Source: Vitrella brassicaformis CCMP3155 (Eukaryota; Protista; Chromerida). Taken from it: a stretch of 64,000 bases of DNA. Each line of letters starts with the position of its first letter. Position 1 is the first letter of the stretch. The notes below the pieces were generated by a model, which ran no database searches, was not told the DNA's origin, and was given only the letters and a program-made list of their open reading frames with translations. The stretch spans positions 310,001 through 374,000 of the forward strand of contig CDMY01000243.1 in assembly GCA_001179505.1 (NCBI GenBank), read 5' to 3'. Positions 46,803-61,800 of this stretch are shown here, in pieces. A program made the position numbers and the translations under genes.

Positions 46803-49792
46803 GGATGCGGTGCTCGCTGCATGCGCCATGTCTGCCTGTGTGTGTGGGGGGGATGCCTGCATACCTTTTCTTCGAAGAAGTGTCGTTGGTAATCGAGTTG
46901 TGAGACGAGGACCACATCAAGCTCCATGCCCAGATGATCCGTCGCACACTATGTGACACACACAACAGATACGGACGTGGGTGACCTCGGCCGGCATCCA
47001 CGCATCGACTCACCTCTGAGGCCTTTTTGGCTTCTTCAGGGTCTCCCAGGTCCCCGTCCTTTTCATCCTCATCGCCACCACGCACCTCTCCATCTGACAC
47101 ACATAGATACATACCACATATGGTAAGGGGGGATCGCGTGTTGTCTGTCCCTGCCCCTGTCCGCTCACCAGCAGCAGCAGTTGGGTCGGCCGGGTGCGGC
47201 AGGGCCACCTCGAAGAAACGACCTGCCGCCACGGCCTGAACCTGTGCACAGTGTTCCCGTGTTCCCACGCCACGGAGAGAGGCGATGCGATGTCTAGAAG
47301 ACCATGCTACAGTATTGCTGTGCGTGGCTCACCAGTCGCCTGTGGACAAAGACATCCTGGTCGTAGTCCCAAATGCGGCCGGATGAGAGTTGCAGGCAGA
47401 ATCGGTGGCCAGTGGTGGCCGCGTGCTCCTTGGCGTGGCCGCCAGCATACCTGAAAACACATACATGACACATACATGACACACACACGCATTTATTCAG
47501 ACACATGTCCAACGGCCGCAGGAAAGGATCGCTGCTCGACACAGTGCAATGTGACCTTCCTACCTGCCGCATCCAAAGTGCCCGCAGACGAGACATATCC
47601 ACAGCTGAACGTGGACACACACACACACAGCCACACCACACTCATCCATGTGGGTATGTATGTACCCCCAATCTACCTACTTACCTGGTTGTGTGCGCCG
47701 CATTCCCTGCAGCTGTCGATGCTCATGTCACTGATGCCGCCGCAGCCCGTCGATGCCCTCGACCGAGTTGTGGCATCGATCTCCCATAGCGCGCCGCTGC
47801 TCGCGGTGGAAGTGGTAGGTGGCCGCAATGGCAGGGACTGCTGGGGCGAGCTCTGACAGAGTGACGGGGAGACAGGGAGGCACGTATGGTGTGGTTGTGT
47901 GTTCGGTGTCTGAGGGTACCTTGATGAGTTGTGCGAGTCCCTGTGTGGAGCTGGCGGTGGTCTTGCGGCGCTTGTTGGTCCCATGAAGGGACAACGGGAA
48001 CCTGAAAATGAAGATCAACATCCATCAACCTCTGGTGGATGCGGGCTGGGATGGATGCCTTGTGCACTGACTGACTGACTTGACGACACATCTGCAGGCG
48101 TTGCACGACCGCAGAGGGAGACACCCCGCAGACAGCCAACCGGAAGACTGCGTCAAGATACCTGCAAACGAGCCACAAAGCACCCATATACATAGCTATT
48201 AATCCATCTCATCTCATCTATGCTGGCAGGTTTGCCTGCCATGCCTACCTACCCGTGACGGAGACGTCAAGCCGTTCGAGGCACACGGGGCACGAGGGGA
48301 TCTCCGAACATAGAGATGGTGACAACGGGGGGGACGGGGGCTGTTTGAGTTGACACACACAACACATGACAGACAGACAGACGTCACATCTGGCACGGAC
48401 CCATATATCCATTCCCGCTGACCTCAATGTGTTTATTGTGCCCATCAGCAGCGTGCCAGTATGTGACGGATGCGACGAAGACGAGGTAGCAGCAGGGCAG
48501 GCCTGCCGTGGTCTGCTGGCTGTCGGGGGCCTCCCGCCGGCCTATCACCGACTGGGCCGTGAAGCTGGGGAACGACTTGCCGTGAAACGCCTGATAGAAG
48601 TTGTCGGCATGTTGCTGAGAGTCAAGGATCACCAGAGCCGAGTAGAAACTGCCAACAGACAATACACACCACACACAAGAAGGAAGAACTAGGCGACAGA
48701 CAGACAAAATAATCTTCCTTCGCAGCTCAGCTCCTCCCACTCCTCACTCAGGGGTCGGTGACGGCACATCCACTTCGCCGTCCCACTCGCTCTCCGCGCC
48801 CTGCCGCACCCCACCAGCAGGCGACCTCTCATCGCCGCCGTCGCCATTGTCGATGGTCGTGATAGCATCCTCAGGCAGGCTGGGCAGCGGCTGGTACGGC
48901 CCCTCCGTCTGCACCCCTATCGACACGCACGCCGCCGGCCGGTGTGCAGGTGAGGCGGAGTTGTCGGGGGGCTGGTGGATGGGGGGGCTGGCTGATCGGC
49001 TGGAGGGCCACGAGGGCCGCCTGAAGACCCGCAGGATGCTGATGGACGCGCGCGACTCGCCGAAGAAGGCGAGCAGGTCGGGCAGCGAAAAGGTGGAGGG
49101 GGCCGCCACAAGGAACAACTGCACAAACATATGCAAACCAGCCACGAAAGCATCCATCCATCCATCCATCCATCCATCCATCTCCTATCGCACTGACTCA
49201 CTGACCATGTGGCTCCTTTGCAGCGGCAGCACACGGAATCCGTGTGACCGGCCGCCGTGCCGAGCCGGCAGAGTCACGCCTGTCTTCTCCCTGACACAGA
49301 GATACGGACGGACACAGCCAACAGCACACAAGTGGTTGCACACAAGTGGCGGTAGGTGGAACCATCATGGCAGAGAATGCATGCATGGCTTACTGGAAGA
49401 GATGGCACTCGCCGGTAAGCTCCTGCACGCCACCCCTGGGAGCAGGCTCTCTGACAGTGGGACACAGCAACAAGACAGATCAACACACCACACCCAATGC
49501 GCAGAATGTGCAGACAGACGATCAGTCACTCCTTCCTTGCTTCCTTCACGAGCAGCACCAGATCTCACCTTCTTCCCCCTGCATCTGTCCTCGGCTGTGT
49601 CATAGTTCCATCATATTGATTCGCTGCATCTTCCTCCGGCGAGCACAGCCTGGCATTGTCATCTATGTCGTTGCCGTCTTGCCCTTGGTTTTCTTCCCGC
49701 TCGACAGTCTGCTCGAAGTGGCTGAGGCGGACAGGCCCGTTGCGGAGGAGACCCGCTGAACAAGGCGACAGCTTGGTCACCAAATGAAACAT
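45918..49792 (-). CDS. BRAP: BRCA1-associated protein / ETP1-like (BRAP2 domain, RING region, ZnF-UBP, coiled coil)
   Basis: LFLVAAPSTFSLPDLLAFF; YSALVILDSQQHADNFYQAFHGKSF; EIPSCPVCLERLD; CRECGAHNQ|LWICLVCGHFGCG|RYAGGHAKEHAATTGHRFCLQLSSGRIWDYDQDVFVHR; LVSQLDYQRHFFEEK. Start codon uncertain. Confidence 0.87.
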
Positions 49793-49897
49793 CACAAACA
49801 CAAGACACTTGCTCCCCCCATTCGCTTCTCTCTTGGCGGTTTCAGGGAGCACCAAACTTGCGAGCTTCGCCAGAGAGCGCCCTTCCTTAGCGTCGGC

Positions 49898-52800
49898 ATG
49901 AGTCGATTTAATTCATTGAAGAGGCAGCTCAACCTGTGCACCTCGAGCAGCCAACTGATCTGCCTCATCAAGGCCGCGATGCAGCTCAAGCAGTGCCGCG
50001 ATGAAGGCGTGATGACGAAGCGCATGTCAGCCGAGTGCTGGGATTTCATCTCGATGAGTGTTTGGAAGTTGGCAAAGCTGCAGGCTGCTTCTCACAATCA
50101 CAATCATCACAGCAACCGCAACAGCCGAGAGGATGGGCCGGGGGAGGTGGTTGAGGGCATGAAGGAGGAGGTGCTTCATCTGATGAAGGAGGCCATCGTC
50201 AGCACATCGGGTGCCGGCGCTGCTCCCCGAGATCTATCCCTTCTCATGTGGGGCTTTGCAAAGCTGCAAGGGGAGCCGAGGGAGGTGCTGCCTGCTGCTG
50301 CTGGTGCCGGTGTTTTCATCGACGGTGACGTCTACGGCGTTCTGGCAGAGGCGTCCACCAAGGCGATGAGAGCCTTCAAGGCGCAGGACATCGCCAACAC
50401 TCTGCAGGCCGTCTCTATTCTACAGCTGCGGGATGAGGCGCTTGTCACGGTGGCGCTGCAGCGGGCGCTCAGCATCATGGACACCTTCACGCCTCAAGGC
50501 ATCACTACGGTCCTCTCGTCGGCGGCCAAGCTGCAGCTGCCCCCTGCCGCCACCCTGATGAACAGTTTGTTTGATCAGCTCGGCGAGAGGAACAGCCACC
50601 TGGTTGCTGAGTGCGACGCCCGCGGCCTGGCCACCCTCTTGCAGGCACTGGCCGCCAGACCCACAGAGCCATGCAGCGACCGGCTGCGGCTGCGGGAGGC
50701 GATGCTATCTCGACTGCGGGTGCTGCTTACCGACAAGGGCGGGGATGGTTTATCTTCTGCTGACGGTGCTCTCACTCTCTGGTCCCTCGCCACACTGGGA
50801 TGGCGGCCCGCCGACGACGTGCTGCAGCGACTCGGTGATTTGTCGGTCAAGTGGTACACCACAACCTCCTCATTGCTATATGGCGGCCCCGCACCCAGCC
50901 CACGTGACGCAGCCACGACGATATGGTCCCTGGCGAAGCTCGACTGCCACCACAGGCCAGCCGCACACGCAATTATGTCGTCCTTCGTCCGGCAACCTTA
51001 CGACTACGGCCCGCAGCCATTCAGCATGCTCGTGTGGGGCGTGGCCAAGCTGGGTTTGCGGAGCCAGGACTTCCAGGCGGCTTTGGCGAATGTGGCCCTC
51101 AAGCACGCGTCGGCACAGCAGCTGTCTCTCCACCAGGCCGTGCTGGTCATCTGGAGCGTGGCTGCCCTCGACCACCGCAACTCGGCCCTCAACAAGGAGC
51201 TCTTCGCCATCGTGCGCAAAGGGTTCCTCCATCTGACTCCCCAGCAGGTGGCCAACGTGGTGTGGAGCATCGCCCGTCTGAAGGCCAAGGAGGAGCCACT
51301 GCTGGCCTCACTCGCCATCGTGCTCAAGAAGAATGCCCCCGCTTTCACGCTTCAGCAGCTGGGCTCCCTTTTCTGGGCACTCGCCACCCTCAAATGGCGC
51401 GACGACGCCCTGTTTGCCCTCCTCTGTGCCGAGGCGGCCAAACAGCTCAGGTACACGAAGCCAGCGTCTAGCGGCAGGAGGGCAAAGACGACGTGCCACT
51501 GTGCTTGTGTGTGTGCAGGTCAGGCAAGTCAGCTGATGCTCAAGTGATGTCCAACATCCTGGGAGCCTTGGGCGAGCTCGGCATCAGGGATTTCGACCTG
51601 CTTGGCGCGGCGGTGGCGAGCATGGGCCGTCAGCCAATGAGGATGACGCCGCCCAACCTCGCCAACACCCTCGTCGCATACGCCCGGCTGCAGCACAGAG
51701 ACGAGCCCGCCCTCACAGCTCTCAGCGATGCGGTGCTGCTGCACGGGAATCGTGGGTCAGGATCTCGCCTGTCAGCACAGCAGCCGAGAGGCGGGATGTA
51801 CGGCAGCCCCTATGGCCTCCTCTCTGACAACAGTTCGCCAGATAGCCGCCGTGATGCACCATCGACTCAAGAGGAGAAGCCCACCACCCCCACCAGCACG
51901 ACCACCACGAGGCTGCCTCCCAGCTTCTCGGGTCAGCATCTGGCGAGCATTCTCTATTCGTTCGGCAATCTGCGATATCGGCACGAAGGCGTTCTGAGCG
52001 CACTGGCTGACACGATCCTCGACAGGATCGATGCCAATCCGTCTCTGGGGTACGGTGGGGCAGACGACGAGTGGCTCTACCTCGCTCTATGGGGGTTCGC
52101 AATGTGCTCTTACTGGGACCATTCTGTGATCCCGGCGTTGTTCAAGGCAGTGGCACGGCACTCGACAAGACTGCGCGACAAGGGGCTTCTGGACGACAGC
52201 GGCAACACACACTCGCGCATCCTGAACCAGGCCTACCAGGCCCTCCTCGCCCAGCACCGGCTCGGCGGCCGGCCGCCCATCGACCTCCCGAGAGACCTCA
52301 TCAACTTGTGGAAGCGGAAGTTTGTGGAGCAGCGGATTGTCGTCAGTTCGTTCCACCACTCGTTCATCACACGGCTGCGCGGCCTGGTGACCGCCGGACA
52401 GCATGAGGGGGCCGGGTGGACAGTGCAGGTGGAGCACAGGACGGAGGACGGCCTCAGTGTCGACGCAGTACTCATCGGCCCACAGCACAGGGGCATTGCC
52501 ATCGAGTGCAATGGGCCGTCTCACTATCTGACGTTCCACGCCAGCCACGCGGCTCAGGACGACTGTGTGGAGCTTGAGCACCTGACCTTCTGTGCGGCAT
52601 CTGATGAGGAGTTCCCCCACGCACACAGGGGGGCAGACACAGGGGCAGACGGCAAGAAAGGCCGAGTGCGGGTGGCTGTGGGCGAGTTGGCCCGCTATGA
52701 CGCTGCCGGGAGCTTCCACCACAAGATCATGAGGCACGATGATGCCACTGGGGGCGGTGTGACGTGCGCCACACCTTGTTTATTGAACGGCAGCAGTGCG

Positions 52801-52920
52801 TGGAAGAGGTCTGTGCTGCGTGCGGGTGGGTGGGATGTGGTGGCTGTGCCGTCGTTCGTGAGTGAGGAGGAGAGTGTGCGGATGATAGAAAGGGCCATGA
52901 GGGGCCACCACACCAGATGA
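49898..52920 (+). CDS. RAP-domain protein with helical (OPR/HPR/FASTK-like) repeats; probable organellar RNA-binding protein
   Basis: About 37-residue repeats such as FKAQDIANTLQAVSILQLRDEAL, FTPQGITTVLSSAAKL, LTPQQVANVVWSIARL and FTLQQLGSLFWALATL; C-terminal EHRTEDGLSVD...IAIECNGPSHY...LNGSSAWKRSVLRAGGWDVVAVP. One intron at about 51450-51518. An alternative upstream in-frame ATG lies at 49784. Confidence 0.86.
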
Positions 52921-54860: not shown

Positions 54861-56267
54861 TCATGAGTCCTCTGCTCTGTTGGCCAGGTTCCTCGCCTGC
54901 CTGTGAGCGGTGACGAAGGGAACGGGGCCGTTCGTGCTCCTCCGCGGGGCCGTTTGCGGCGGCCTCGGCACGCAGCCACACCCACACACGGGCTGTGCTG
55001 CCGGTGTGTGTGGGGGCGGGCGGGAGGGTGGGAGGGGACAGGGCGGAAGGTGCATGGTCGTGCTACGTCTGCTGCCTGGCTGGGGGCGGGGTGGCGGTGT
55101 CAAGGCCAAAGACGCGCCAGAGGGAGGCGACAGTGGATATTCCGCCGGGGGAGGGCTGGCCAGGCCCGCATGGTGGTGGTGTGCCTCGGTAAGAGGCGAC
55201 TCAGGACCGATACCTGGATGTATACGAGAAACACAGACAGACAGACAGACAGGGATGCATCGATGAACGCACTGACTGCATCAGGTGAGTGACTGCCTGC
55301 CTGACGTACCGGCGGACTCGTCAGCCGGTCCAGTGCCAGTCCCCTTGGCCCCTCCCAGCTCAGCGGCGCGTCGCTTCTTGTCCCTCCGCTGCTTCCTGCT
55401 CTTGGGTTTCTTGCCGCGCGGCAGACACAGGTGGCAGTGGTCGCACAACTTGCCCTTCCAACAACCACGCTTCGTACCAAACCAATAACACCTGACGTAT
55501 GGATGGATGGATGGATGGATGGATGGATGCCGAGTCTCTGCCAGTGGTGTGTGCTGAATCGTGTGTCGTGTCGTCGGCGTACCGTTTGTTAGGGCAGGAT
55601 GGTGTGTCTCTGTGCGACATGCTGCCGATGTTCAGAACGGTCCCGCGCAGACGTCCCTCATACTGTGAGGCGGGGCAGCTGCGCGCCCGTCGCACTGCCG
55701 TCCCCTCGCCGGCCTCATCCAGCCCCTCCCTCGCAGCGTCCGCGCTGACACTCAGCCCGCCCGGCCCACCATTGTCCTGATACATTGGCGCACTCGCCGC
55801 TCTGAATGGCATCCCGCCGCGAGCATAATCACGACGACCGCCTCCCTGCTGCTGTTGCTGCTCAGCCTGCTGTAGTTCGTGTGGTCCTTCATCGATGTGT
55901 GGGATCAAAGGCGGCTTGGTTGGGAAGTGGATGAATGTGTGCTTGGTGGGGAACTCGGTGAACCGATGGCCGGGCGGGGAGAGGTGCAGCGGAGGTGTGG
56001 GGCCGGGTTCCTCATCCGGCTCATCTCCCCAAGAGGAGGGCGGCGAGGTGGCCTCACTCGCCGGGAGCGGCGTGATCGCCACCTCAAATGCGGCAGCGGT
56101 TGTGCGTGTTGGACACGGCATGCTGGCCCGACGCAGTGCCATCTGCCGCACAACAAGGGTGGTGCTGCGGCTGCGAACACACAACATACGCCAGATCAGA
56201 TAATCACATCAGTGAGGCCATGTGCGGCATATCTTACCTGTGAGGCGATGTGTGCCGTTGAAGGCAT
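54861..56267 (-). CDS. CCCH (C3H1) zinc-finger protein, otherwise low-complexity
   Basis: The phase-2 join gives SCPNK-R-CYWFGTKRGCWKGKLCDHCHLC, an exact C-x8-C-x5-C-x3-H, preceded by TKHTFIHF, RAASAP, RARSCP and LNIGSMSH. First exon MPSTAHIASQ|gtaag. 3' end approximate. Confidence 0.68.
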
Positions 56268-56397
56268 CTTGAGAGCCCTCGACAACGAGGGAAAGGAGCC
56301 CTGCCTCTTCTCCCAAAAAACAGCTAACTTAAAGCTTGCAGCTGCGGTCCTTCGCAGCGCGCAATCTCCCCCGACGCATCCTGGCAAAGATCTGACG

Positions 56398-58359
56398 ATG
56401 ATGCATCACCGCGCTGCTGCCCTGCAACGGTCCGTAGCACTTCCTGCCGCCGCCCATCCATTGCACCTCAACCGTAGATGGCACCACCCAGATCTCTCCA
56501 AGGTGGGCAGACCAGGCAGGCACACACGCTGGCTACGCATTGTTTCTTTGTCTGAGTGAGCAGTTGCGGGGTTGGAAAGCGGTCGAGAAGGAGGCAGAGG
56601 TCGGCCACGCGGCGTGGCAGAGGGAGCAGGAGCATGCCCTGAAGATGGGGCTGCCCGGCGCCTCATCCCTCACGGACAAGACCATCCCCACCTTCTCGAG
56701 AGGGGAGCTGCCTCACTTCGCGGGCATTCTGACCTTCATGAAGGCGCCTTATGTGGAGGACGTCCGTGAGGTCAAGAAGTACGATGCCGCTGTGGTGGGC
56801 GCGCCTTTCGATGGCGGCACCACCTATAGATCTGGGACCAGGTGCGCCCGCACGCATGACATGACGTCATGTCATGCGAACGGAGTGGATGGCGGGACTG
56901 GACTGTGTGTGTGTGTGTGTGTGTGTGTGCGCAGGTTTGGTCCACAAGGAATTCGGCGCATCTCGGCCTTGTACAGCCCTTACAATTTCGGTCGGTAGAC
57001 GGCAGGCAGGAGGGCATCAGACAGACCTCCTCTGGTCCCCTATCTCTTCATTCACCATGCTGTGCTGTATCTGTCTGTGTGTCTGCTTGTATGGTGTCAG
57101 AGATGGGTGTGGACTTGCGCGAGCAGATGACGCTCTGCGACACGGGCGACGTCTTCACGTGAGTGCGCCAGCATACACACAGTGTCTGCATGCCTTCCCT
57201 GTTGGCTGACTGTGGTTGGTTACATCCATCAAATAAATCAGTATCCCGGCCAACATTGAGAAGGCCTTCGACCAGATCTCCAATGGTGTGGGGTTCATTG
57301 CGGCCAGCGGGGCCTTTCCCATTGTGCTGGGCGGCGACCATTCTATCGGATTCCCGACGGTCAGGGGAGTCGCATCATGCACCAGGTGCTTAAGCATATA
57401 GAACACTCACACTCACACGGAGAGAAGGCGACCTGCCAATGAGTGTGTGTGTGTGTGTGCGCGTGCGTTGCAGCAAGAAGATCGGCATCGTCCATTTTGA
57501 GTGAGTACCGAGGCAGGCAGGAACGGAGCTGCAATCGAATCGAGATCTTGTGTGTGTGTGTGTGTGTGTGTTTCCCCCAATCCCTGCCAGCCGCCATGCG
57601 GACATCCAGGAGAAGGACTTGGACGAGCGAATGCACACCACACCCTAGTAAGTGAACAACGAAACACACAGAACCAAGCACAAGGCCCCATCCGCTCCCC
57701 TCGTATGTGTGTGTCAGTTTCCATGCGACCAATCTGCCCAACGTCCCTCCCAAGAATTTGGTGCAGATCGGCATCGGTGGCTGGCAGGTGCCGCGTGCGG
57801 CGCTGCCCGTCATGCGGCAGAGGAGACCCACCGTCTTCTCTGTCAGCGACGTCGAAGAGCTCGGACCAGAAAAGGCAAGACAGATAGACAGACAGACCGG
57901 GGTGGGCAGCCACTATACACTTCGGATGGTGGCTCTTCTGCAGGTGATAGAGATGGCGCTGGATCGCGCGTGGGACGGGGTCGATGCTGTGTGGCTGTCG
58001 TTCGACATCGACTGCATCGACGCCGCTTTCGTGCCGGGAACCGGTGAGTCGAAGCGACACAACCGCACAGCCTTGTCCGTCTATCCATCTGTGCACGTGT
58101 GTGTGTGTATGGTCCATATGCAGGTTGGCCCGAGCCTGGGGGCTTCCTCCCAAGGGAGGCCTTAAAGATGGTTGGCTTGGTGGCCAAGGAGGGCCTGTGT
58201 GGGATGGAGATTGTCGAGGTCAGTCCCCCCTACGACACCTCGGACATCACATCGCTGATGGCGCTGAGAGTGATCGTGGACACGCTGGGCTCCCTGGTGG
58301 CGCACGGCAAGATGGGCGCACACAAACACATCATCGACAAACCCTTCTCGCCTTTCTGA
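56398..58359 (+). CDS. gdmH: Arginase/ureohydrolase-family enzyme with guanidine hydrolase (GdmH) signatures
   Basis: Spliced protein: IPTFSRGELPHFAGILTFMKAPYVEDVREV; GTTYRSGTRFGPQGIRRISALYSPYNF|EMGVDLREQ; LGGDHSIG; HFDRHADIQEKDLDERMHTTPYFHATN; SFDIDCID; PGTGWPEPGGFLPRE; EVSPPYD. It has all arginase metal ligands plus the GdmH-type N-terminal extension and Trp. Confidence 0.92.
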
Positions 58360-58837
58360 TCCATGCATGGGTGGGTGTTCGCCTGGATGGTTGCGAGATA
58401 CGTGTACTATGGATAGATGTATGTCGACCTGTGCAGCAGTTGATGGAGGCTGCCTTGCTGCTGATTGGCCTCCAGCATCAGGTGTCGCCGCCTGCCGCCT
58501 CATGGCAGGCAGGCCACACGTGATGATGGGGAACTGTCGGCATGCATCAAGTCAGCCCATGCTCGTATGTATGTTGTGCTGTGTGCGCATCTTGTCTGTC
58601 TGCTGGAGGCATTTTTGCCTCCTGGGTGTACGCGTACGTTCATTCGTGGGAAGGTTTTGGGTCTTGATCGATCTGGCTGCTGAGACATTTGTTCACAGAC
58701 AGACAGACAGAAGAATGGATGGATGGACGGTCCATGCGCACAACAAAAGGGATTCCTCGCAACCCACACACACGAATGCATGCAATGCATTCACACCAAC
58801 AAATGTATCCCTCCCAGCTCTCCGCCGGCTCAGTTAG

Positions 58838-61800
58838 TCAGTAGTCGTCCAGCATCGGGCCTGAATTGCAACGTCCATGCATATGTTGGCCTCCATGCCT
58901 CCATTTAGATTTCTCACCGCATGGCTGCAGCTTGTCGGCTTCCTCCTGTCCGTAGCGCGACACAAACGCGTCGTACGGCAGGTAGCCACCCCCCACACGG
59001 ACTGACCGATATTGACACAGGGCACACGTATCCACATCGCCTCCCCTTGTTTCGTTCGGCCCTTGCTTACAGACGATGGCGTCGTTTTGTATGGTAGCGA
59101 CGCATGTCTTGGTGCCGAAGAGGTAGGTGCCCTGCTCCCGCCGGCAGAAGGGGACGGGCGGGGGGTGCTCACGGACCCTCTCAGCCAGCAACGCGTCTAT
59201 GGGGTCGTTCTGCACACACACACACAGGCAGACAGAAACACAGAGAATGGGCAGGGGTTGGGTTGCGTGTTGAAGTGTGCGTGCGTACCTTGACGGGAAT
59301 GTATTTGGTGGTGATGACGTTGAGTCTGTTGGTGAGGTGGCGCACCTCACACGTCCGCTCCTCTAAAGCGCTCAACAGCTGACCACGATCCTCTGGCCGT
59401 GCATCCATCCAGACACCACAGACGTAGCATATCATCTATCTCTGTGTCTCTGTGTCTCTGTCTGTGGATAGATGTATACCATCCCATTTGATTGATCCGA
59501 GGCGCAGGTCCTCACACGCCTGGTAGTAATCCCCGCGCTGATTGACGACGCACGAGAAACACATGAAATGGATTGTAGAGACACGTGCCCCTCTGCTGTC
59601 TTGTGCGTGTCCGTACCATGGTGTCCATCTGCTGGTCCTTCTGGCTGAGCAAGTCACGAGTCTGCAGCCACACCGGACACACACACACACATATAATACA
59701 CGAGACAGCAGCCCATTGTGTGTCTCTACTTGCCGTGCTCAAATGCCCCTCGACGTCACTCAAATGCGCCACCTGAGTGCAGGCCAGGCAACATCACATA
59801 CACCCTGCGGACCGGATCTTCCTGTGTTTCTTTGTTTGCACCTTTGCGTCCATTTTGACGATGATGTCAGTCAGTTCGGCCCGCTTGAGCTCACCGGATT
59901 CCAACAACTCATCCTTCGAAGCTACCGTACGACGCATCTCCTACACACACCCAAACAGACACACATGCATCCATCGATCGAGCTATGTCTGGATGGCTGT
60001 GTGTGTGGTGGGGGTAGGTGCCTGCCTGTATGTTTGTCTCCAGCTCTTGCTGCCGGTGCTGCATCCCGGCCACCACAGAGCGGTGCTCCTCGGCTGCACG
60101 TGACGCATGCTCCTCCATCACACGCAGCTGATCCTACGCGAAGGAACGAATGCACACACATGACAGGGTGTCCTTGCCCACCTGTCCACCGATGTGTATA
60201 GGTACCTGCATGTGTGCCCTGGCTTGCTGTGCGGTGTGTGCCTCGTGCTGGGCCTGCGCAAGCCTCTCGGCCAGGCCGTCAGCCTCCTGTGGACGGACAA
60301 TGGACAGACACCACAACGCATTAACGAGTGGGATCATTGGCGTGGTGCATTGATTGTGTGTACATCTATTTTGAGTTTCTGTTCGAGCGAGAGGATCTGA
60401 GCCGCCAACTGGTGCTTCTCGACTGTGCCCTGAGCAGATAAACGTGGGTGCAGGTGGAGGGGTGTGGCGGTTGGCGGTGTGTGTGTGGTTGCGCGCCTGC
60501 TGCACTTGTGTCTTAAGCTGATCTCTCTCTTTCAGCGCTGCGGTGCTCTGCGTCTGCAATTCCTCGTGCGCCTGTAGAAACAAAAGGAGCGGACAGACGA
60601 GTGGGTGGGTCGATGGATGGATGGATGGAAGACACACACGTGTATGCATTATGTGAGGTGTGTGCTGACTGACCTGTTCGAGCGCTTTGCGTTTCTGCAG
60701 GGCGGTGTTGAGTGCCGACTGCAGCTCCTCGTGTTGAGACGCCATGGCCTGACGCAACGAGCGAATGACACATACAGGCCATGTGAACACCTGCCTGCGT
60801 CAGTCAGTGCGGCGTACCTGTTTGGTGTCTTGTGTGCCCTTGGCCTCCCTCTGCAGCTGCTGCTTCAGGTACTCTATCTCGCACCTGTTTGTGGGTATGT
60901 GTGTGTGGGTGGGCATCCACCAACACATCCATTCATTCATTCATTCATTCATTGACGGCAGGTGGGGTGTGCCCACCCGTCGGCCAGGCGCGCAGTCCTC
61001 TCCGCCTCCAGTAGACTCCACCGCTCACCACGGACACTGATCGGCGAGAGAGACACGCACACACGTGGATACAACGGCAGAGACTGAGCCGCCGACCTTT
61101 CCACTCGTCTGTCCATCTCCGCTTGCAGGTCCTCATACCGAGACTCACACTGCACGCCGTGAGACGGATACACAGCCTGGCAGTGAACATCCAATTCACA
61201 CACACCCTTACGTCCTGCAGCTGTTGTTTGGTCTGCTGGTTCTCTTCCTCCAGGATGGCGCGATGCCGATTCAACTCCTCCACTTGAGACCTGAACAAAG
61301 ATGGGGCGGGGGCGTGAGTGTGAGTGTGGGTGTGGCTGTGTATTGTGGTGTGGATGAACCTGAATTGTTCGATGGCTGCCGTGTAGTGGCGGTGGAGCTC
61401 TGCCCGCTGGGACGCATGCACCTCCTGACCCTGATGTACGGCTGCTGAGGTGAGGTGCGTATGTATCTATGGGTGCATTACATCGATACACACCTCTTTG
61501 TCCAGCGCCATGCTGTTGATAGTCGCAGTCGCATCCTGATCAGAGAGACAGACACAAGGGACACATTGCATTGCACATGAAGGCCTCCACCCATTTCGCC
61601 TACACCCACGCACCTTGATCTGCCCCTGCAGGTGTGCAACGACGGCCTGGCTCTCGGCCTCCCGACTGCCCAGACCCCGACGCAGCTCATCTGTCTCAGC
61701 CTAATGATGATACACTCGTGGACAACACGCCCACATTCATGGCACCTGACTGAGTGGCTGACCTCTTGTGCTTTGAGCAGTCGCGTCTTTTCGGTGAGCT

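Follow-up and report, generated by a model that had tools for sequence, protein, structure and literature searches.

A spliced nuclear gene for a predicted guanidinase of the GdmH clade in the chromerid Vitrella brassicaformis

Background

Guanidine has only lately been recognised as a natural nitrogen compound; it is made by plants and algae, and some bacteria live on it. Does the chromerid Vitrella brassicaformis encode an enzyme able to hydrolyse free guanidine, and in which compartment of the cell would such an enzyme work? These questions are raised by a multi-exon gene of the arginase family found in a 64,000-nucleotide stretch of the CCMP3155 genome (GenBank assembly GCA_001179505.1, contig CDMY01000243.1, positions 310,001 to 374,000 of the forward strand). 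This whole stretch is referred to as the window, and all positions are given in its numbering. An earlier note, made from the letters of the window alone, had read the gene as a GdmH-type guanidine hydrolase (guanidinase) carrying a mitochondrial presequence. Heterokont algae are reportedly holders of probable guanidine hydrolases, and algal guanidinases are not a new idea; what is new here is a well-resolved chromerid member. We describe a nuclear, expressed gene whose product is likely a guanidinase, that is, a GdmH-clade member of the ureohydrolase (arginase) superfamily, and probably an enzyme of the mitochondrial matrix with a leader in place of the bacterial tail.

Assignment to the guanidinase family

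Database searches were run exon by exon and with close full-length relatives, the spliced Vitrella protein itself not being among the listed matches. Among solved structures, exon 2 (56564..56841) exhibits the best scores against 9FEK (E-value = 5.7e-32) and 7ESR/7OI1 (6.2e-31), followed at a distance by a guanidinobutyrase (4.5e-08). Exon 10 (58124..58359) behaves likewise, with 7ESR (1e-20) and 9FEK (9.5e-19) ahead of the next family (1.7e-05). 9FEK is the guanidinase of Nitrospira inopinata (Palatinszky et al. 2024, PMC11410670), and 7ESR and 7OI1 are structures of Sll1077 (GdmH) from Synechocystis sp. PCC 6803. The closest full-length relative, an environmental protein 77% identical to our model (P0336), scores 549 bits against 7ESR and 544 bits against 9FEK. 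The same protein reaches 162 bits against proclavaminate amidinohydrolase and guanidinobutyrase, and 120-130 bits against solved agmatinases. The homologues carry the Pfam domain PF00491. NCBIfam agmatinase models gave 20-39 bits with the exon pieces, for cut-offs of 174-302 bits set for whole proteins, which such pieces cannot reach.

The N-terminal extension is a specific link to the characterised guanidinases. For the exon 2 translation an alignment of 87 residues was obtained with the N-terminal regions of both 9FEK and 7ESR (E-value about 1e-31), and the other ureohydrolase families align only from its residue 45-51 onwards. Palatinszky et al. (PMC11410670) named four residues of the N. 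inopinata enzyme as guanidinase-calling, namely Thr105, His222, Trp313 and Glu344, with Thr97 and Trp305 as the Synechocystis equivalents. Mapped through the printed alignments with a chain offset of +2 allowed, they correspond to Thr122, His238, Trp329 and Glu359 of the Vitrella model, and all four are conserved: Thr122 is the second threonine of GGTTYR, His238 lies in ERMHTTP and Glu359 in GMEIVE. The six candidate metal ligands (His199, Asp223, His225, Asp227, Asp315 and Asp317), chosen from the conserved motifs of the family rather than from a solved complex, are likewise present and occupy invariant alignment columns.

Gene structure and expression

The gene model, for which the region 55800-59000 was read, covers positions 56398-58359 on the plus strand. 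Its ten exons join in frame into a product of 405 amino acids (aa). The nine introns are 61-110 nucleotides (nt) long; eight are of the GT-AG type and one, intron 8 (57875-57943), is GC-AG. Several of them are filled with (TG)n runs. The coding sequence has a G+C content of 61%, against 57% for the window. Full-length homologues of some 400 aa align with residues 27-405 free of internal gaps and are 74-80% identical to the model. The motifs that the earlier note had quoted for a multi-intron arginase-family gene were all found in place, with those of the metal ligands intact: IPTFSRGELPHFAG at residues 76-89, GGDHS at 196-200, DRHAD at 223-227, QEKDLDERMHTTPYFHATN at 229-247, DIDCID at 315-320 and GTGWPEPGG at 326-334, the codon of Trp329 being 58126-58128. 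No second copy of the gene was found in the 64-kb window. Bacterial contamination was considered and is ruled out by the nine spliceosomal introns (RNA contigs) and by the eukaryotic context over 64 kb.

Of the words sampled from the locus, 0.38 and 0.32 occur in two sequencing runs flagged as RNA (X1 and X2, respectively), whose contigs were placed on 55900-58900. Introns 3, 4, 7, 8 and 9 are directly visible in these contigs as joints. Introns 2, 5 and 6 are implied by the arithmetic of the contig records, in which 112 nt correspond to exons 3 and 4, and 84 nt (record positions 411 to 496) to exons 6 and 7. Eight of the nine introns are thus confirmed by RNA, and exons 2 to 10 are expressed. 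The claim that the gene is spliced therefore holds for these eight introns in RNA; the first intron (between 56502 and 56564) is carried by homology.

Exon by exon, the structure is as follows. Exon 1 (56398..56502, residues 1-35) opens with an ATG and encodes an acid-free leader rich in Arg, Ala and Leu, followed by RRWHHPD and an in-frame GT donor at 56503. Exon 2 (residues 36-128) provides the guanidinase-specific N-terminal extension, including IPTFSRGELPHFAG, together with Thr122, and is covered by the RNA contigs from 56689 onwards. Exon 3 (56935..56990; RFGPQGIRRISALYSPYNF) is placed by the arithmetic of the second record of the X1 contig and by the joint 56989/57100. Exon 4 (57101..57158) is placed by this joint and by 57158/57242, both found in both RNA runs. 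A contig piece spanning 57242-57385, in agreement with the alignment, defines exon 5 (57242..57385), which holds His199. Exon 6 (57474..57500) is a micro-exon of 27 nt derived from record arithmetic, and its last two bases open the codon of Asp223. Exon 7 (57591..57647), ending at the joint 57647/57718, encodes DRHAD with Asp223, His225 and Asp227, as well as His238. Exon 8 (57718..57874) precedes the GC-AG intron, which was confirmed in both RNA runs as a joint skipping 69 nt that can be shifted by 3 nt to yield 57875-57943. Exon 9 (57944..58043), with Asp315 and Asp317 in DIDCID, is supported by a contig piece and by the joint 58042/58123. Exon 10, for which both the structure matches and the RNA contigs speak, encodes Trp329 and Glu359 and ends with the stop codon at 58357-58359. 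The 3' untranslated region (58360..58751) follows, the RNA contigs ending at 58680 (X1) and 58751 (X2).

A second, diverged gene of the same family is present elsewhere in the genome, and its contigs occur in the RNA runs. In all four runs these contigs share short conserved stretches with the window, at 56689-56761, 57243-57285 and from 58305 onwards. Variant letters at 56719, 56722 and 56728 and a few odd long "joints" are attributed to this paralogue and not to a second copy of the window.

Relatives and phylogeny

Exon 2, searched against 1.84 billion cluster representatives, matched 399 proteins with E-values up to 0.001, many of them fragments. Word-index searches started from two of these matches yielded two large groups. 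One consists of proteins of about 400 aa, of which the named ones are alphaproteobacterial "agmatinase family proteins" (Stellaceae, Azospirillum, Magnetospira, Magnetovibrio); the other is algal, with proteins of numerous diatoms, of brown algae including Ectocarpus and of the haptophyte Diacronema. To these algal homologues a cluster look-up contributed one from the green picoalga Bathycoccus, and a third search provided the cyanobacterial relatives of GdmH. The nearest relatives of the model are environmental proteins. P0336 is probably eukaryotic, since its contigs exhibit widely spaced genes, including one of the triose-phosphate-transporter type.

A careful maximum-likelihood tree of 64 rows was computed with E. 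coli SpeB, a plasmid speB and two clavam-type enzymes of Streptomyces as outgroups; Sll1077 and the N. inopinata enzyme were represented by close relatives of theirs, and GbuA was not included. The sequences bearing the N-terminal extension are separated from the outgroups with support of 100/100. Consistent with the reading of the earlier note, the Vitrella model falls inside the Trp-bearing, guanidinase-type clade (91/85) and apart from the agmatinase-type outgroups. Within the tree, the cyanobacterial and Nitrospira-type sequences form one clade (99/98) and the alphaproteobacterial sequences another (90/97). The 28 algal rows group together (94/90), and do so with three bacterial rows at 94/96; the model itself joins seven environmental sequences (99/99). 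One protein at the base of the algal clade (P0358) sits in a compact bacterial gene array. The join between the alphaproteobacterial and the algal clade is weak (78/57). An origin of the algal genes from the plastid, that is, from cyanobacteria, is disfavoured: constraining algae and cyanobacteria together costs 33 log-likelihood units (approximately unbiased test, p = 0.024, for a group named after the tree was seen). In this tree the algal clade branches with proteobacterial-type and not with cyanobacterial genes.

Three further proteins were considered as eukaryotic relatives or paralogues and rejected: P0001 is named as a protein of a bacterial metagenome-assembled genome, P0002 is a frameshifted gene within a bacterial operon, and the near-identical relatives of P0003 are alphaproteobacterial. 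Another environmental protein (P0077, 397 aa) represents a sister lineage which possesses the N-terminal extension and the threonine and in which the pocket tryptophan is replaced by threonine (GTGTPEPGG). It also exhibits a His-rich insertion of 21 residues after HTTPWY. Its substrate is probably different.

Bacterial loci of the nearest relatives

A scan of bacterial genomes was examined at its best 80 loci, nearly all of which are labelled Alphaproteobacteria; Synechocystis and N. inopinata are not among them. These loci exhibit a conserved same-strand array of an NMT1-type binding protein, a permease, an ATP-binding cassette (ABC) ATPase and the gdmH-like gene. In 12 of the 16 loci that were scanned with Rfam, a Guanidine-I riboswitch, about 3 kb upstream and of the same orientation, precedes the ABC importer and the homologue (L002:5091-5199, L026:5202-5312, L008:4970-5080, L001:5085-5192, L081:2975-3082 and others). 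Several of the riboswitch-less loci among the 16 have little upstream sequence. The riboswitch linkage independently ties the nearest bacterial relatives to guanidine. One of the loci with this riboswitch is on the megaplasmid of Sinorhizobium fredii NGR234.

Directly downstream of the gdmH-like gene, 49 of the 80 best loci, and also the bacterial sister group of the algal clade, encode a protein of 130-170 aa (plus strand, L020:9169-9636; also L017:9220-9708, L022:9202-9720, L001:9190-9591 and L091:2660-3052). It consists of a long His-rich tail, located at the N-terminus in most cases and at the C-terminus in two, joined to a conserved domain of some 100 residues, for most of which the predicted fold has a pLDDT (predicted local distance difference test) above 90. 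Neither a Pfam match nor a solved-structure match was found for this protein, its relatives in the AlphaFold DB all belong to uncharacterised clusters, and an Atlas search returned weak metal-related leads only. We see in it a candidate for nickel delivery that would take the part of HypA/HypB. No HypA/HypB-type cluster was found among the recurrent neighbours of the best 80 loci. The statement of the earlier note that GdmH needs HypA/HypB-like chaperones is accordingly not general: the alphaproteobacterial relatives have the His-rich gene instead, and N. inopinata is without known chaperones of this kind (PMC11410670).

In six bacterial loci a gene for a 2-oxoglutarate/Fe(II) oxygenase is located upstream of the gdmH-like gene (e.g. 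L047:5294-6346, plus strand). The superfamily of these oxygenases includes guanidine producers, and the pairing of the two genes may form a local source and sink.

The N-terminal leader

The first 28 residues of the model, those preceding HHP, include four arginines and seven alanines, contain neither Asp nor Glu, and lack a hydrophobic core of the signal-peptide kind (maximum 8-residue hydropathy 1.6). Their amphipathic moment is weak to modest. Among the algal homologues the segment before HHP has a median length of 29 residues (range 13-80) and is free of acidic residues in 59% of the sequences, against 2.7% of the alphaproteobacterial ones (Mann-Whitney p 1e-24, a value that overstates the independence of these related sequences). 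By eye, Ser, Thr, Ala, Leu and Arg seem abundant in the algal leaders, as they are in typical presequences. An arginine two residues before the first histidine would fit a processing-peptidase site; bacteria have the same arginine.

The earlier note had described exon 1 as a presequence grafted onto a bacterial-type enzyme. The composition is indeed similar to that of mitochondrial presequences, and the shift towards it is apparent, at the level of sequence, across the algal clade. The graft, however, needs to be redrawn, as the 3' end of exon 1 (RRWHHPD) is homologous to the bacterial N-terminus. In bacteria the same motif is itself preceded by a basic tail of about 22 residues; the algal leader, 26 residues ahead of RRWHHPD in the model, takes the place of this tail and is not an extension.

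Genomic surroundings

An Rfam scan of the whole 64-kb window returned no riboswitch or other known RNA, in agreement with the earlier note, which had seen no guanidine riboswitch. A profile search of the window detected no homologue of the bacterial His-rich partner. Among the open reading frames (ORFs) scanned between 48.8 and 63.5 kb no functionally linked neighbour was found: they comprise one marginal RAP-domain match and Pfam-less ORFs, with no metal-handling family. The marginal match (24.4 bits for a cut-off of 24.2) lies near the end of the ORF 51493-52917 (plus strand), and the adjacent ORF 49784-51544 exhibits sub-threshold matches to DUF1601 and DUF6832 only; the region of ORF 51493-52917 is possibly the gene of an organellar RNA-binding protein. 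Head to head with the guanidinase gene, a minus-strand gene at 55900-56320 contains an intron at 56171-56237 (CT..AC on the plus strand). The RNA contig of this gene extends to 56320 and leaves just 78 nt to the guanidinase start codon, so that the divergent promoter must be very short or the transcripts overlap. Just after the 3' untranslated region lies a (CAGA)n/(GGAT)n microsatellite (58690-58730), which is dispersed in the genome, because its summed contig depth is far higher (about 560-1400, in the two whole-locus runs).

Discussion

The best matches among solved structures, the conservation of all four specificity residues and six candidate ligands, the position in the tree and the riboswitch linkage of the bacterial relatives together uphold the GdmH-type assignment made in the earlier note. 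Several observations weigh against our reading of the locus. The public databases name the algal homologues agmatinase, the searchable library, in which bacterial GdmH and the production of guanidine by plants and algae are covered, yielded no paper on a eukaryotic guanidinase or on any member of the algal clade, and neither the chromerid metabolism paper nor its tables list guanidinase. The window showed no nickel chaperone, no nickel transporter and no gene for urea degradation, HypA/HypB not having been searched directly; the lack of anything there on nickel, urea or guanidine transport is expected, since a eukaryote has no operons. The RNA contigs start at 56689 and cover neither exon 1 nor its splice to 56564. 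The alphaproteobacterial homologues have a basic tail before HHP (median 22 residues), nearly always with acidic residues (typically RDERRF), so that the leader may not be a cleaved signal. The late choice of the constrained group in the topology test belongs to the same account.

The agmatinase names point to a reading in which a guanidinase-clade enzyme would have a substituted guanidine, for example agmatine, methylguanidine or some guanidino acid, as its cellular substrate, with a role in arginine, polyamine or urea-cycle metabolism. A diatom "agmatinase" gene, whose membership of the clade was not checked, was grouped with urea-cycle genes and is up at night together with urease (PMC5156380), and the function of the eukaryotic members is a prediction from sequence. 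We nevertheless consider this quite unlikely, as Sll1077 is reportedly selective for guanidine over agmatine (PMC12186494, PMC12623156) and the N. inopinata enzyme, on which several guanidino compounds were tried, is described as a bona fide guanidinase (PMC11410670). The model retains four of the four specificity residues, its nearest bacterial homologues are under guanidine-sensing riboswitches, and for true agmatinases, with E. coli SpeB in the outgroup of the tree, the scores against the closest relative are lower by about 420 bits. The missing RNA over exon 1, in turn, would be explained if the first exon were wrong, translation starting in an unseen upstream exon or at Met62 in exon 2, and 56398-56502 lying outside the mRNA. 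The X1 and X2 contigs contain nothing of 56398-56688 (in the run search, X2 is without any of this segment and X1 is not listed as containing it), and the transcript of the minus-strand neighbour comes within 78 nt of the proposed ATG. Yet the first 125 nt of exon 2, a conserved coding sequence, are missing from the RNA contigs as well, so that the gap over exon 1 is uninformative. In every run the contigs break at 56689, where a second contig with five differing letters begins, and this assembly break is due to the words shared by the paralogue. Furthermore, RRWHHPD at the end of exon 1 aligns, across the exon 1/2 junction and in frame through a canonical GT-AG intron, with an R-x-H-H-P motif whose R, H, H and P are invariant in a nine-sequence alignment of algal and alphaproteobacterial proteins; the chance of finding such a motif in some 500 nt upstream is about 1e-3 by a rough estimate that was not computed. 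Exon 2 contains no ATG before Met62, and a start at Met62 would delete 26 residues that align with the conserved N-terminal region. A run of a kind not known (X7) contains 0.65 of the words of 56398-56688, which equals the share calculated for exon 1 spliced to exon 2, although partial DNA coverage could give the same value. Between HHPD and GWK the model falls short of its relatives by two to three residues, and no other splicing that could make this stretch longer was found. A wrong first exon is thus very unlikely.

The place of the enzyme in the cell is less firmly indicated than its family. It may be that the guanidinase stays in the cytosol and that its N-terminal 26-28 residues are the counterpart of the bacterial tail, a part of the mature protein packing on the neighbouring subunit. 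The alphaproteobacterial tail of similar length before the same HHP motif, the contact that the N-terminal extension makes in N. inopinata with the neighbouring subunit (PMC11410670) and the weak amphipathic moment of the leader are all in favour, and we give this possibility noticeably less than an even chance. It leaves the loss of acidic residues from the segment throughout the algal clade and the longer, more variable and presequence-like leaders unaccounted for; the arginine before the first histidine fits a processing peptidase too, though it is also bacterial. Import of the predicted guanidinase into mitochondria, as suggested by the composition of the leader, is therefore the reading we moderately favour.

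By homology, free guanidine would be split into urea and ammonium at a two-metal centre, which we take to be formed by His199, Asp223, His225, Asp227, Asp315 and Asp317. The pocket would be narrowed by the N-terminal extension, Thr122 and Trp329, leaving room for the small free guanidinium alone. Ni, or Ni together with Mn, is the probable metal, by analogy with the two bacterial enzymes that have been characterised; Mn enzymes have the same ligands, so that the sequence cannot tell between the metals. The solved N. inopinata enzyme contains one Ni and one Mn per subunit (PMC11410670). As the algal-clade leader, standing in place of the bacterial basic tail, has the composition of mitochondrial presequences, the enzyme would probably reside in the mitochondrial matrix. 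Vitrella may, on these sequence grounds, use guanidine as a nitrogen source. We know of no nickel enzyme in mitochondria, a point on which the literature was not searched. One may go further and picture the whole algal guanidinase clade as a mitochondrion-imported nickel enzyme, acquired once from a proteobacterial-type donor, its tail remodelled into a presequence, and metallated without HypA/HypB, either unaided through the His-His-Pro close to the start of the mature protein or with the help of a eukaryotic equivalent of the His-rich partner. Taken as a whole this extended proposal is unlikely.

Diatoms, brown algae, haptophytes, a green picoalga and a chromerid all have members of the guanidinase clade, which suggests that phytoplankton of the eukaryotic kind may be among the competitors for guanidine, and that the "agmatinase" of algal urea-cycle schemes may be mis-assigned. 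The Vitrella gene offers a concrete, fully resolved model for expression and assay, and a possible new partner for nickel handling emerges from the comparison with bacteria.

Comparison with known systems

The Ni-dependent GdmH of Synechocystis (Sll1077) has in common with the Vitrella model the fold family, the N-terminal extension, the pocket Thr and Trp and the six candidate ligands, with about 66% identity as measured on a near-identical, Sll1077-like cyanobacterial protein. In contrast to the Synechocystis system, the Vitrella gene is nuclear, contains nine introns, belongs to no operon, and is without a riboswitch or GhaA/GhaB (HypA/HypB-like) neighbours. The Vitrella protein also exhibits an extra N-terminal segment (R-x-HHPD and the presequence-like leader), and HTTPYF where the cyanobacterial proteins have HTCPWF, and it belongs to a different subclade. 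The N. inopinata guanidinase (9FEK) shares all four specificity residues, and no chaperone genes are known for it either; identity of the model to N. inopinata-type fragments is about 70%. The N. inopinata gene is bacterial and lies behind a riboswitch, together with a permease, and its N-terminal extension differs in sequence from that of Vitrella.

SpeB, GbuA and proclavaminate amidinohydrolase are members of the same superfamily with the same metal motifs. They lack the N-terminal extension, are about 30-35% identical, and score about 390-430 bits lower against the closest relative of the model; the SpeB- and clavam-type outgroups split off at 100/100.

Closer to Vitrella are the gdmH-like operons of marine Alphaproteobacteria (Roseibium, Hoeflea, Thalassospira, Azospirillum, Magnetospira). 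Their proteins are 71-75% identical to the model, the value for its nearest bacterial relatives being about 74%, and share the motif R-R-F-H-H-P-D; they differ in the operon context (riboswitch, ABC importer, enzyme and His-rich protein), in the acidic residues of the tail and in having HTTPWF. The algal "agmatinase" homologues (Fistulifera, Chaetoceros and Seminavis; Ectocarpus; Diacronema; Bathycoccus), 69-76% identical to the model, are in the same clade (94/90). They come from stramenopiles, a haptophyte and a green picoalga, whereas the Vitrella gene is that of a chromerid, an alveolate; common to all of them are HTTPYF, the C-terminal DKPF.PF and a short, basic, acid-free kind of leader before HHP.

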